Shown: positions 23,892 through 30,667 of the stretch, piece after piece | Numbering within the stretch: the first letter of the stretch is position 1 | Layout: each line of letters opens with the position of its first letter | NCBI RefSeq assembly: GCF_032191835.1 | Contig: NC_083237.1 | Location: 41,974,001 to 42,038,000 of the forward strand | Length of the DNA: 64,000 bases | Source: Heteronotia binoei | Taxonomy: Eukaryota | Reading direction: 5' to 3' | Notes under the pieces: generated by a model | The model's database searches: none | What the model was told of the DNA's origin: nothing | Seen by the model: only the letters and a program-made list of their open reading frames with translations | Program-made: the position numbers and the translations under genes

Positions 23892-24677
23892 TATAGCAGT
23901 GGATCAAAAAGAACAAATTTATATCAATATCTAATCAATATATATGGCTCAGCAATGCTTGGAATGAATAGGGCAAAATAGCAATGTTTTTAGGAATCTT
24001 TGTGTGGCTCTACATGGGTGCAAGGGAAGCCAGCTAGGTGACAGATAGTGAAATTTGTAACTTCCCTAGCAAAACCGCAGAGAGAGAGGTTGCTAAGAGA
24101 TGCAGGCAGCTGGCATGCTGCCAAAGAAACTTCCTCTTTTTCTATAAGACAGTAGAAACAAATGTATGCAGGCTGGCAGAATATATAATCTGAAGAAACA
24201 GTAGTTATGAGAGAAATAACATGATTAGAAAAGCTTTAGGTAGATTTTAGAGTGTTTTAAGCATAAGAAATGTATGAGAAATAGTGTGTACCAGTGACAA
24301 GCATGATGCTATTTAGAAAAGCAGAAGTTGCAGCTGGCAACGAGAAAAGGCCCATATAAGGTAAACCAACCCAGGAAGATGAAGTAACGGACTGGCACAC
24401 CACACAAGTTGTGGTCGAAGCGTGTTTTTGTCAGTGTCCCAGGGACCTGGGAAGCTGAGATGTTTTAGGTAGTGAGTGGGTGGAGGCACCCTATAATGGA
24501 TGGCAGGTAACTGCAGTCATTGCTCAGAGCTTAGAGTCCACACTCTCTCTGAAGCCCGTGTGCAAGGGCCCGTGCACGTTAAATAAAGAACGCTGTTTTC
24601 CTGATTCCTCGTCTCCGCTGCCTCCATTATTGATCCGGCTGAAATTGGTAACGTATAAATAGGTTTTTCCCTTTACA
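23892..24677 (+). repeat. 5' LTR
   Basis: TAT...TACA termini; TATAAT 24492-24497; AATAAA 24582-24587. Confidence 0.95.
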
Positions 24678-24682
24678 TAATT

Positions 24683-24700
24683 TGGTGCATTGGCCCGGTT
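24683..24700 (+). other. Primer-binding site, tRNA-Gly-like
   Basis: TGGTGCATTGGCCCGGTT vs the complement of the tRNA-Gly(GCC) 3' end TGGTGCATTGGCCGGGAA (15/18, first 13 identical). Confidence 0.85.
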
Positions 24701-28307: not shown

Positions 28308-29081
28308 ATGGCAGAAAGGATGTCACCATCCCCGTCACCGAGGCCTATGCAAGAGGCCCAGGTAGATGTTTGCCTTGATTGGAGCAGTGAGCTGGAAGAA
28401 AATAAAGTTGTTCGTAAAGGACGAGCCAGAAAGACAGCGGCTCTAACCGAGAACGGGTCCGGGAAGAAGCCTGGGAAAAAAGCCGTTGCGAAAGTCTACC
28501 ACCTCCAAATCGAGGGGCTGAGACGGTTTCTTATGTTTAAGAAGCTGAATGAGGCTCTGGAGTTTAAAGATGCCCAGGAAGACCTTGAAACGGGGAGGAA
28601 GACCTCGAAGGGTCGTGGTGGAGGCAGAAGCCCCCCAGACGATCAAGAAAAAACGAGACCCCGACTTCCGGGTAGGCCAAGGGCCATGCGACCATCATTG
28701 GCACACGACGAGTGCGCCTTTTGCCTCGAGAGGGGGCACTGGATCCATTCGTGCCCAGACGCCCCTCCCCAATTTCGAGACAGAGGAAGAGGCCGAAGGG
28801 GAGTGCTCGACCACCACTGGCATGCGATGCGTGAACCTAGGGTCATGAAAGTAGCCACGGGATGGTATCTCGCCCCCTACAAGTGGGACCACACAGCTTG
28901 GAACGAGGTCTCAGACGTAAGAGCTGCAATTGAAGCGACACCAGAGAGAGATGACCACGGAGGCGGAGGAGATACAGACGAAGCAGCTGACCCAGCCCCC
29001 GAACCAGATGGGAGTCCACAAGAGCCTCTCCAGAAGGAAGAGAGCCCAGAAGAAAGCTCGGAGGAAAATTCTAATTGTTAA
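28308..29081 (+). CDS. 257-aa gag nucleocapsid-like protein with one CCHC zinc knuckle, basic N-terminal half and acidic tail
   Basis: LAHDECAFCLERGHWIHSCP (C-X2-C-X4-H-X4-C; compare gammaretroviral DQCAYCKE.GHW..DCP); good Kozak context (aaaATGg); acceptor ttttgtttctgtacAG at 28264-28265. Confidence 0.72.
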   Translation: MAERMSPSPSPRPMQEAQVDVCLDWSSELEENKVVRKGRARKTAALTENGSGKKPGKKAVAKVYHLQIEGLRRFLMFKKLNEALEFKDAQEDLETGRKTSKGRGGGRSPPDDQEKTRPRLPGRPRAMRPSLAHDECAFCLERGHWIHSCPDAPPQFRDRGRGRRGVLDHHWHAMREPRVMKVATGWYLAPYKWDHTAWNEVSDVRAAIEATPERDDHGGGGDTDEAADPAPEPDGSPQEPLQKEESPEESSEENSNC

Positions 29082-29881
29082 AACCTTGATGTGAAGCCAC
29101 AAAGAGGGGACCCCTTTTGAAGTAACTTTGATTTATTTGCTTTTTGGCGCTTAAAAAACAATGCTTTTTCTTGCTAGCAATAGCTCTATGCAGAAGATTT
29201 GTTTGCCCATGAATCAAGCTAATCAGGAAAATCCCTGGGGAGAGTAGGTAGTGAAAATGTGTCCCAAGCTAGTTTTAGCTTGACGCATTGCCCAGTGCCT
29301 TGTCCATATTGAATTTTTGTTCATAGTAAGATATTTAGCAAAAGTAAGACAAAAGATTTAGTTCTTTGTGATTTTATTCATGAAAGGCCCTTTGGAAAAA
29401 TTGTTAAAATGAGAAAACCCAGCCCCAGAAAGAAATGTTATATGCTATGATGATAGGATAGGCTTGTATTGAACCTGACTTTGTTTTGCTATGCAGTTTT
29501 AATCAAAGTTTTCCTAGATAGGCTTTTCAGGTGCAGTTTTGCTCCCAGACCTGATTATTTGAAGCCCGACCTCTGGACCTCACTCACCAGCAGCAGTGAG
29601 GTTCCACAGGCAACGCCCTCTGGATCCTGGCCTACCGGAAATGGCAGGATTCTACAGGCATCGGAGACGACTCCCCTAGCTGCAGTCACACAGGAGCTGA
29701 TTGCTCTATGCTCAGGGAGAAGAAATTCCTCAAGCAACAGCCAGCTGATCGAGTTAAGAGATCCATGATTGGACCTGTTCCAGGCTTAGGGACTGTAGTA
29801 ATGTAATGGTGCAGTCCTGGGGTCTGGAGCGGGCCTGGCAAATGGTTATAAGTAATTCAAACTCCGTTTGAAAGAGGGGAA

Positions 29882-30667
29882 TATAGCAGTGGATCAAAAA
29901 GAACAAATTTATATCAATATCTAATCAATATATATGGCTCAGCAATGCTTGGAATGAATAGGGCAAAATAGCAATGTTTTTAGGAATCTTTGTGTGGCTC
30001 TACATGGGTGCAAGGGAAGCCAGCTAGGTGACAGATAGTGAAATTTGTAACTTCCCTAGCAAAACCGCAGAGAGAGAGGTTGCTAAGAGATGCAGGCAGC
30101 CGGCGTGCTGCCAAAGAAACTTCCTTTTTTTCTATAAGACAGTAGAAACAAATGTATGCAGGCTGGCAGAATATATAATCTGAAGAAACAGTAGTTATGA
30201 GAGAAATAACATGATTAGAAAAGCTTTAGGTAGATTTTAGAGTGTTTTAAGCATAAAAAATGTATGAGAAATAGTGTGTACCAGTGACAAGCATGATGCT
30301 ATTTAGAAAAGCAGAAGTTGCAGCTGGCAACGAGAAAAGGCCCATATAAGGTAAACCAGCCCAGGAAGATGAAGTAACAGACTGGCACACCACACAAGTT
30401 GTGGTCGAAGCGTGTTTTTGTCAGTGTCCCAGGGACCTGGGAAGCTGAGATGTTTTAGGTAGTGAGTGGGTGGAGACACCCTATAAAGGACGGCAGGTAA
30501 CTGCAGTCATTGCTCAGAGCTTAGAGTCCACACTCTCTCTGAAGCCCGTGTGCAAGGGCCCGTGCACGTTAAATAAAGAACGCTGTTTTCCTGATTCCTC
30601 GTCTCCGCTGCCTCCATTATTGATCCGGCTGAAATTGGTAACGTATAAATAGGTTTTTCCCGTTACA
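29882..30667 (+). repeat. 3' LTR
   Basis: Collinear with the 5' LTR at offset 5990, no indels; preceded by PPT 29870-29881; TATAAA 30482-30487. Confidence 0.95.

Follow-up and report, generated by a model that had tools for sequence, protein, structure and literature searches.

How did a gene of the BTG/Tob family come to lie inside a long terminal repeat (LTR) element of the gecko Heteronotia binoei, and what might it do there? The element in question occupies positions 23892–30667 of the window, i.e., the whole 64-kb stretch of DNA analyzed here, and this copy is located on the 68-Mb contig CM063339.1 of assembly GCA_032191835.1. A sequence-only reading of the window had described a young provirus-like element in which a retrovirus had captured the host gene TOB2 and which spreads with the aid of a helper. 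A broader answer is preferred here and given a probability of roughly three in four: the window element is an insertion of a non-autonomous LTR family of gammaretrovirus-like descent, whose ancestor captured pieces of TOB2 and p53 once and whose members are copied by helpers and kept under selection. Capture and helper-dependent spread are well supported, the helper dependence being suggested by the absence of pol and env together with the many young copies. The sequence-only reading overlooked the p53 segment, which is fused to a retroviral knuckle in a second open reading frame (ORF), termed ORF2. TOB is not the sole captured gene, and this alters the likely biology of the element.

The provirus-like structure itself is as previously described. 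The window copy has the paired 786-bp LTRs, the 4-bp target-site duplication (CCAG), the tRNA-Gly-type primer site, and the polypurine tract of a class I endogenous retrovirus (ERV), whereas the pol and env of that class are absent. Its LTR pair is 98.7% identical, with 10 mismatches and zero gaps, and has the termini TA…CA, as against TG…CA in three related copies (L001, L008, and L010). The primer site matches 15 of the 16 bases of a published tRNA-Gly(GCC) 3′-end probe (PMC9262602); all primer-site types were assigned against probes or oligonucleotides printed in PMC9262602, PMC7810713, and PMC7757669. As the sequence-only reading had stated, there are no pol or env motifs: the plus-strand open stretches of at least 45 aa and the two long minus-strand ORFs gave no Pfam match to reverse transcriptase, RNase H, integrase, protease, or env. 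Capsid and matrix also had no match in the window element, and the CCHC knuckle of ORF2 is its sole recognizable gag part. Since pol and env are missing, the element would be a non-autonomous derivative that is copied only with the proteins of another retrovirus. A complete ERV with a hidden pol was rejected; the open stretches searched contained no pol match.

The element belongs to a multi-copy family. TOB2-like proteins that form one clade are encoded at no fewer than 33 loci, spread over 12 chromosome-scale contigs; 32 accessions and the window copy account for 29 different proteins, all from H. binoei. Four further clusters of 195–198-aa sequences named “protein Tob2-like” were retrieved in the Tob search, again from H. 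binoei only, and Gekko, Paroedura, and other squamates are represented in the database by native TOB2, with no Tob2-like protein. The more than 30 RefSeq gene models of this name in H. binoei (32 XP accessions) are element ORFs, not host paralogues; ORF2 and two tryptophan-rich (W-rich) ORFs of the element are entirely unannotated. Nine further loci were examined (L001, L002, and L005–L011; ten copies with that of the window). All nine contain sequence colinear with the window element, at 74–98% nucleotide identity per stretch, and in the copies closest to it the similarity extends from the end of U3 as far as the polypurine tract. LTR pairs with 96.4–100% identity are present in seven of the nine (607 bp, 99.8%; ~880 bp, 96.4%; 711 bp, 99.6%; 548 bp, 100%; 541 bp, 99.8%; 704 bp, 100%; ~720 bp, 98.1%). 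Five of these LTR-paired loci show clean 4-bp duplications, all different (CTGT, ATAG, CCAC, CTAC, and CCGC), so that six copies, including that of the window, carry a duplication of their own. The identical or near-identical LTRs point to activity in the recent past. The number of loci supports the proposed spread of the element.

The BTG/Tob identity of the Tob ORF is clear: it matches the Pfam family BTG with an E-value of 1e-32 (112.5 bits; cut-off 23) and solved Tob1 structures in the PDB with an E-value of 2e-55, and it shows a weak PAM2 match. It is not, however, the main internal ORF for which it had been taken, because ORF2 (257 aa), with its gag-type CCHC knuckle, is the longest ORF of the window element. 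The Tob protein is 59% identical to, and colinear with, residues 1–193 of squamate TOB2 and then continues with 14 unrelated residues. The corresponding DNA is 76% identical to native H. binoei TOB2 (L004, 5987–6579), and the match begins 13 nucleotides 5′ of the ATG, within the native coding exon. The same junctions, 13 nucleotides before the ATG and at codon 193, are found at all nine further loci, which lie on other chromosomes. Native TOB2 is located on a different chromosome, CM063332.1; the window copy thus lies away from the TOB2 locus, and its olfactory-receptor cluster context, noted in the sequence-only reading, is real (receptor genes at 1354–2334 and 51244–52251). In a neighbor-joining tree, the element proteins form a clade with TOB2, apart from TOB1, in 100 of 100 bootstraps; this support covers the TOB2-plus-element clade, and the long branch of the element proteins leaves their placement within amniote TOB2 unfixed. 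The 29 element Tob proteins are themselves monophyletic (100/100 bootstraps). Since they are monophyletic within TOB2, a single capture before the family diversified is indicated.

The capture of TOB2 was nevertheless partial, in that the insert is host-derived but comprises only about half of the gene. Of the residues invariant across amniote TOB2 domains, the element protein keeps 70%, and it also has the conserved block that follows the first PAM2 of TOB2. W93, which we take from published mutant work to be a CAF1-contact residue, and the PAM2 phenylalanine F140 are retained in all 29 family proteins, and 28 of the 29 have a length of 195–197 aa. Compared with native TOB2 and the BTG/Tob family (PMC7430666, PMC8632095), the element Tob has the same BTG/APRO domain with its box A and box B region, W93, and the first PAM2 with F140, whereas it ends at codon 193 of 342 and lacks both the second PAM2 motif and the S254 regulatory site. 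F140 is the PAM2 phenylalanine of Tob2, a protein that needs both PAM2 motifs to bind PABP fully and to be regulated through S254 (PMC7430666).

ORF2 reveals the second capture. Its residues 61–91 match Pfam P53_tetramer with 30.5 bits (cut-off 20.7), and ORF2 also matches p53 chains in the PDB with an E-value of 3e-6. A longer segment, residues 18–109, aligns with residues 263–361 of H. binoei p53 at 45% identity (E 1e-17, BLASTP), and this host p53 was the sole significant ORF2 match among 5.8 billion proteins. ORF2 has no match to the Pfam P53 DNA-binding domain, and the alignment to host p53 starts only at residue 263. By these alignments, the p53 part is a fragment without the DNA-binding and transactivation parts. 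At the nucleotide level, positions 28435–28471 and 28515–28579 match two p53 exons with 83–84% identity. These exons are 3.3 kb apart in the native gene and 44 nucleotides apart in the element, i.e., they are joined without an intron, which indicates that the p53 insert came from a spliced mRNA. A separate observation concerns the native p53 locus (L003), where extra stretches at 6292–6495 and 14613–14852 match p53 residues 40–107 and 179–262 with 51–58% identity. Translation of the L003 p53 gene model departs from the database protein, and these stretches beside the true exons may be decayed exon duplicates or model differences.

Downstream of the p53 part, ORF2 residues 127–154 match PDB entries 1a6b and 1u6p (E 4e-5), which we take to be the nucleocapsid p10 of Moloney murine leukemia virus; the match to Pfam zf-CCHC_3 is weak and below the cut-off. 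Judged from these matches, ORF2 joins a p53 segment in frame to a knuckle derived from gag, which is how a transduced gene is classically arranged. The tetramerization core of the window copy is identical to host p53 at 22 of 30 residues, compared with 14 of 47 in the upstream flank. Across the copies compared, the identities are 22–27 of 30–31 in the core, 11–24 of 47–51 in the upstream flank, and 2–10 of 12–17 in the downstream flank. The core is kept in nine of the ten copies, and in eight of the ten it lies in an ATG-initiated ORF of 196–275 aa. The CCHC pattern is present in ORF2 of four of the ten copies, from two subfamilies. Losses also occur: the tetramerization domain is gone from L007 and the knuckle from the subfamily L005/L009–L011. 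As measured by these identities, the constraint in ORF2 is concentrated on the tetramerization core. In each of the five copies aligned, a pyrimidine tract and then an AG lie ahead of ORF2, which is only suggestive of a splice signal.

Pairwise Nei–Gojobori estimates of the ratio of nonsynonymous to synonymous substitutions (dN/dS), with codon bootstraps, indicate that these ORFs are maintained. For the Tob ORF, deep pairs give dN/dS values of 0.18–0.36 overall, and pairs with dS of 0.65–0.9 give 0.18–0.27, with upper 95% bounds of at most 0.42. Values for ORF2 are 0.33–0.45 (knuckle and tail, 0.39–0.45; p53 part, 0.39–0.63), and those for the W-rich ORFs are 0.13 for ORF-A versus L001 and 0.23–0.35 for ORF-B, on account of which the W-rich ORFs are clearly coding. 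The 95% intervals lie below 1 in most pairs. On these estimates, the Tob ORF, ORF2, and the two W-rich ORFs are under purifying selection between lineages, and their products would therefore matter for the propagation of the element lineage. Since the modules have been carried through a long diversification under such selection, they would help the element rather than the host. The age assigned by the sequence-only reading must accordingly be divided: “young” applies to the insertion, in view of its LTR identity, but not to the capture, since the TOB part has diverged to 76% nucleotide and 59% protein identity and the family lineages are split with dS of up to ~0.9.

The subfamilies differ in their regulatory ends and in their additional modules. 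Only the last ~130 bp of the LTR (R-U5) are common between subfamilies, and the U3 regions are unrelated. The tRNA-Gly primer site is found in the window copy, L001, L007, and L008; a tRNA-Phe(GAA)-type site in L002 (~5462–5490; probe from PMC7810713); and a tRNA-Arg(ACG)-type site in L005 (~5456–5480), L010 (4472–4500), and L011, where 18 bases are identical to the end of the oligonucleotide (PMC7757669). These differences suggest repeated recombination with different co-packaged retroviruses or helpers. L010, whose LTRs are 100% identical, retains the end of a gamma-type env at 10412–10825 (+) (Pfam TLV_coat 458–551 of 560, E 1e-14). This env end, the knuckle, and the 4-bp duplications together argue for descent from a gammaretrovirus-like enveloped virus. 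A further stretch of L010, 9824–10303 (+), was also noted with the env remnant, and the cytoplasmic-tail end of env also occurs in L005 (9276–9617). In L007 (5791–6360, +) and L008 (5787–6356, +), an open ORF of 189 aa lies between the W-rich ORFs and the Tob ORF. The encoded protein, 94.7% identical between L007 and L008, is a C-type lectin of type II membrane topology whose nearest relatives are CLEC2D (E 4e-36) and CD69. A lectin remnant, the last 32 codons, is left in L001 (7242–7337), and the window copy has no lectin sequence at all. The distribution of these modules points to repeated gain and loss of host-derived parts in the family. As for the surroundings of L002, this copy lies between ~1.1-kb repeats (2811–3992 and 12697–13878; 74–78% identical, 9.9 kb apart), and an RT-RNase H-like ORF is located at 11609–12073 (−); an older LTR element may harbor this copy.

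From these features, the following course emerges. An ancestor took up two processed host mRNA pieces before the family diversified: a TOB2 piece from the start codon to codon 193, and a p53 piece from the end of the DNA-binding domain through the tetramerization domain, joined in frame to the element’s own knuckle. Later subfamilies retained this cassette; U3 and primer site (Gly, Phe, Arg) were swapped, and the lectin, the env remnant, and the knuckle were each acquired or dropped. Transcription would be driven by the LTR, helper proteins would package, reverse-transcribe, and integrate the element RNA, and the Tob ORF and ORF2 would probably be read from spliced RNAs. The predicted action of ORF2 follows the example of p53DD, an artificial mini-protein of the p53 oligomerization region that forms hetero-oligomers with wild-type p53 and blocks transactivation (PMC2440547). 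Like p53DD, the p53 part of ORF2 is the C-terminal oligomerization region without DNA-binding and transactivation parts; unlike p53DD, it is a natural capture, starts further upstream (host residue ~263), stops short of the extreme C-terminus, and is joined to the knuckle and an acidic tail. It may co-assemble with host p53 into defective tetramers, and a natural analogue of p53DD is the best-supported reading of ORF2. p53 restrains retroelements (PMC4701979, PMC7608743), and such a decoy could blunt both the p53 response to integration damage and the repression of retroelements by p53. Because integration creates DNA damage and p53 restrains retroelements, this would favor the survival of element-copying cells. 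The Tob module, in turn, would bind the CAF1/CCR4-NOT deadenylase, as well as PABP weakly and without S254 control, and would shift host mRNA deadenylation in a direction that the sequence does not give.

Other origins of the Tob-bearing loci are far less credible. That TOB entered a single, otherwise dead ERV after its integration, as a LINE-mediated retrocopy (LINE, long interspersed nuclear element), has a likelihood close to nil. The TOB2 coding exon is intron-less, so the Tob part alone is silent on its route of arrival, and an A-rich run does follow the Tob ORF in the window copy. Yet this run is not common to the other copies, the TOB insert has no flanking target duplication, the element Tob proteins are monophyletic, and the junctions are shared by nine loci on other chromosomes, seven with LTR pairs of their own and five with a clean duplication. 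Neither a single-copy element nor a late entry of TOB, the two outcomes that the sequence-only reading had regarded as fatal to its proposal, was therefore found. Segmental duplication as the source of the copies is excluded by their different flanks and duplications. Only marginally better is the notion of a duplicated or domesticated host gene family whose LTR-like flanks are incidental. It could appeal to the NCBI annotation of the loci as protein-coding “protein Tob2-like” genes and to the purifying selection on their ORFs, but most of the examined copies have near-identical LTRs at their ends, together with a primer site and a polypurine tract, six have their own 4-bp duplication, and copies lie inside other repeats or genes (a LINE at the window; the range of a leucine-rich-repeat (LRR) gene at L001). 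Moreover, U3 and primer site vary as in retroviral lineages, and selection acting over dozens of dispersed young insertions fits replicating lineages and not one host locus.

The remaining doubts concern function. The captured ORFs might be passengers without function that look conserved because the active masters were few and recent, an idea that is improbable although not negligible. It is favored by the closest pair, window versus L001, with a Tob dN/dS of 0.58 and an interval of up to 1.15, by the sampling of copies through intact Tob ORFs, and by the module losses noted above in L007 and L005/L009–L011. It is hard to reconcile with the deep pairs, whose dN/dS intervals are well below 1, with the nearly constant Tob length, with the invariance of known functional Tob residues, and with the focus of ORF2 constraint on the tetramerization core. 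The strongest competitor, which is still judged unlikely, assigns ORF2 a task within the element: the p53 domain would tetramerize the knuckle into an RNA-binding chaperone that marks element RNA for packaging by the helper, and host p53 would not be targeted. The trimeric LINE-1 ORF1 protein is the analogue invoked for this role. Tetramerization domain and knuckle indeed occur in one ORF in four copies from two subfamilies, dN/dS is similar in both halves of ORF2, and neither capsid nor matrix is encoded by the element itself. This idea is weakened, however, by L005/L009–L011, which lost the CCHC pattern yet keep the tetramerization domain in an open ORF of 196–275 aa between LTRs that are 99.6–100% identical. 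The core also stays close to host p53, as co-assembly would require.

Several points weigh against the preferred reading of a helper-copied family with selected host-derived modules. A search for a helper, confined to the 64-kb window, gave no second copy or relative of the element’s LTR, leader, knuckle, or W-rich units. Because annotated Tob ORFs that are intact led to the nine further loci, the intactness of Tob is ascertained rather than sampled. For the p53 part, dN/dS is only moderate (0.4–0.6), with some intervals reaching 1. The antagonism of p53 is argued by analogy with p53DD, and a Tob module with a single PAM2 could be either an activator or a competitor of deadenylation. Finally, the window copy itself may be inert, because each of its two W-rich ORFs has a frameshift.

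A bolder interpretation can be offered only tentatively: the family may be a long-lived gecko gammaretrovirus satellite with a toolkit of host-derived decoys, namely a p53 tetramerization poison, a truncated Tob adaptor for CCR4-NOT, and, in one subfamily, a CLEC2D/CD69-like lectin. The identity of some LTR pairs means that the family may still be active. Large DNA viruses use captured CLEC2-type lectins as natural killer cell decoys. If the toolkit interpretation is true, this would be the first natural virus-like element encoding an antagonist of the p53 oligomerization domain, and p53 surveillance would be a selective barrier to retroelement spread in the vertebrate germline. A p53 decoy would likewise provide independent evolutionary evidence that p53 restrains vertebrate retroelements, together with a natural system for studying the evasion of this restraint. 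The Tob piece suggests that mRNA deadenylation is another host pathway that may be worth manipulating for an element. H. binoei includes parthenogenetic hybrid lineages, in which the activity of the element could be compared.

Acutely transforming defective retroviruses carry a transduced cell gene fused to gag (v-onc type) and depend on a helper. The H. binoei family resembles them in its mRNA-derived insert, in-frame fusion to a gag remnant, loss of pol and env, and presumed helper dependence. However, v-onc viruses are somatic, short-lived isolates with growth-promoting genes, whereas the H. binoei family is a germline one with dozens of copies and deep divergence, and its inserts come from growth-restraining genes, one of them apparently reduced to a decoy module. 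Mouse ETn, mobilized by MusD, and VL30 are non-autonomous ERV families mobilized in trans. They likewise keep the LTR, primer site, and polypurine tract, have lost pol and env coding, and reach many copies via a related helper. Yet they have no conserved host-derived ORFs, whereas four ORFs are under purifying selection in the H. binoei family, which suggests that this element contributes proteins of its own.

Retroviral capture of host genes is textbook knowledge for short-lived tumor viruses, but germline cases are few and poorly understood, the main precedent being crocodilian ERVs. These carry KIT-ligand (CrocERV29) and nectin3 (CrocERV31) and are, like the H. binoei family, reptile germline ERVs with an intron-less host ORF (Chong et al. 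2014, PMC4299795). Their captured ORF is also monophyletic, sister to the host gene, and under purifying selection in several copies, and the lineage with nectin3, having lost env, is considered to spread intragenomically (PMC4299795). The H. binoei family differs in carrying at least two host segments together, and three in one subfamily; both inserts, TOB2 and p53, come from anti-proliferative genes and are cut to single functional modules. Further differences are the gag-knuckle fusion, the loss of the whole pol, the exchange of U3 and primer sites, and the class, which is gamma-type in H. binoei and ERV4 or spuma-like in the crocodilian lineages. A full-text literature search gave no account of a retroelement that had captured TOB2 or p53, and no description of the H. 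binoei family. From the crocodilian and v-onc cases, the nearest ones described, this family is set apart by the combination of several truncated growth-restraining and immune gene modules with pol loss, U3 and primer-site swaps, and deep diversification while active.

Table 1. Features of the Tob-bearing LTR element and its immediate flanks, by position in the window.
Feature	Position	Strand	Remarks
LTR element, whole	23892-30667	+	6,776 bp
Target-site duplication, left copy, CCAG	23888-23891		Same 4 bases 3′ of 3′ LTR
5′ LTR	23892-24677	+	786 bp; TATA-like box 24492-24497, AATAAA 24582-24587
Primer-binding site, tRNA-Gly(GCC) type	24683-24698	+	5-base spacer after 5′ LTR
Leader	24699-25835	+	Contains conserved block 25242-25541
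W-rich ORF-A	25836-26337	+	One frameshift in window copy; intact in L001, L006
W-rich ORF-B	26383-26812	+	One frameshift in window copy; intact 122-aa ORF in L001, L002, L006, L007
Spacer, non-coding	26813-27610	+	CLEC2D/CD69-like lectin ORF here in L007/L008, absent in window copy
Stretch from host TOB2 mRNA	27611-28172	+	13 nt of 5′ untranslated region and codons 1-193; nucleotide and protein colinearity
TOB2-like ORF	27624-28217	+	197 aa, intact; BTG/APRO residues 1-110, first PAM2 129-143, 14-residue non-TOB tail
ORF2	28308-29081	+	257 aa, intact; p53 C-terminal segment, CCHC knuckle, acidic tail
p53-derived part of ORF2	28359-28634	+	Residues 18-109, similar to host p53 263-361; BLASTP
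Tetramerization core	28488-28580	+	ORF2 residues 61-91; Pfam P53_tetramer
Nucleocapsid-like segment of ORF2	28686-28769	+	CCHC knuckle at 28713-28754
3′ non-coding region	29082-29869	+	Contains conserved block 29592-29741
Polypurine tract	29870-29881	+	Purine run abutting 3′ LTR; also in L001, L007, L008
3′ LTR	29882-30667	+	786 bp; pairs with 5′ LTR
Target-site duplication, right copy, CCAG	30668-30671		Direct repeat of left copy
Left flank, distal part of split LINE ORF2 (neighbor)	22903-23891	-	Weak zf-RVT match
Right flank, reverse-transcriptase domain of same LINE (neighbor)	30668-31042	-	Pfam RVT_1 149-192/205, E 3e-8

The positions of the features discussed above and below are listed in Table 1. 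The window copy has an intact Tob ORF and an intact ORF2, and no interrupting stops occur in the four ORFs beyond the two W-rich frameshifts. Two non-coding blocks are conserved. The block in the leader is 91–93% identical to L001 and is a candidate packaging region; its RNA fold z-score of −1.7 is unremarkable. The block in the 3′ non-coding region is 96% identical to L001, above most coding parts, and is kept in L006 too. It is open on both strands, has an equally unremarkable RNA fold z-score of −1.2, and may be a cis-acting element. An Rfam scan for RNA elements returned a single chance-level match to a bacterial small RNA.

The W-rich ORFs consist of two or three tandem units of ~100–120 aa, each with five invariant tryptophans. 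Units A and B of the window copy are 34.5% identical over 84 aa, and the middle unit of L001 is absent from the window copy; the W-rich region spans 5621–7171 in L001 and 6131–7143 in L006. No homologues were found in Pfam or PHROGs, nor in the PDB by single sequence or by a ten-unit profile. A full HMMER scan of 1.84 billion representative proteins and a word-indexed search of 5.8 billion proteins with the W-rich alignment both gave zero matches. A single-sequence AlphaFold model reached a mean predicted local distance difference test score (pLDDT) of 30, too poor for a fold search. The W-rich ORFs may represent what remains of a rapidly evolving gag, or else an accessory protein of a new kind.

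The element is inserted in the reverse-transcriptase ORF of a LINE, as the end of an RVT_1 domain lies in the right flank and the ORF continues in the left flank. A second LINE of the window, at 11506–14546 (+), has endonuclease and reverse-transcriptase ORFs (Pfam Exo_endo_phos, RVT_1) and runs into an N stretch at 14551–14956. The two LINEs share no nucleotide or protein match and belong to different families. Two pol-bearing repeats of the window have no sequence in common with the Tob element. One, at 19063–20482 (−), is a pol remnant with RNase H and integrase; the other, at 38091–38750 (−), is a reverse-transcriptase remnant within a GC-rich block of 36–44 kb (55–61% GC).

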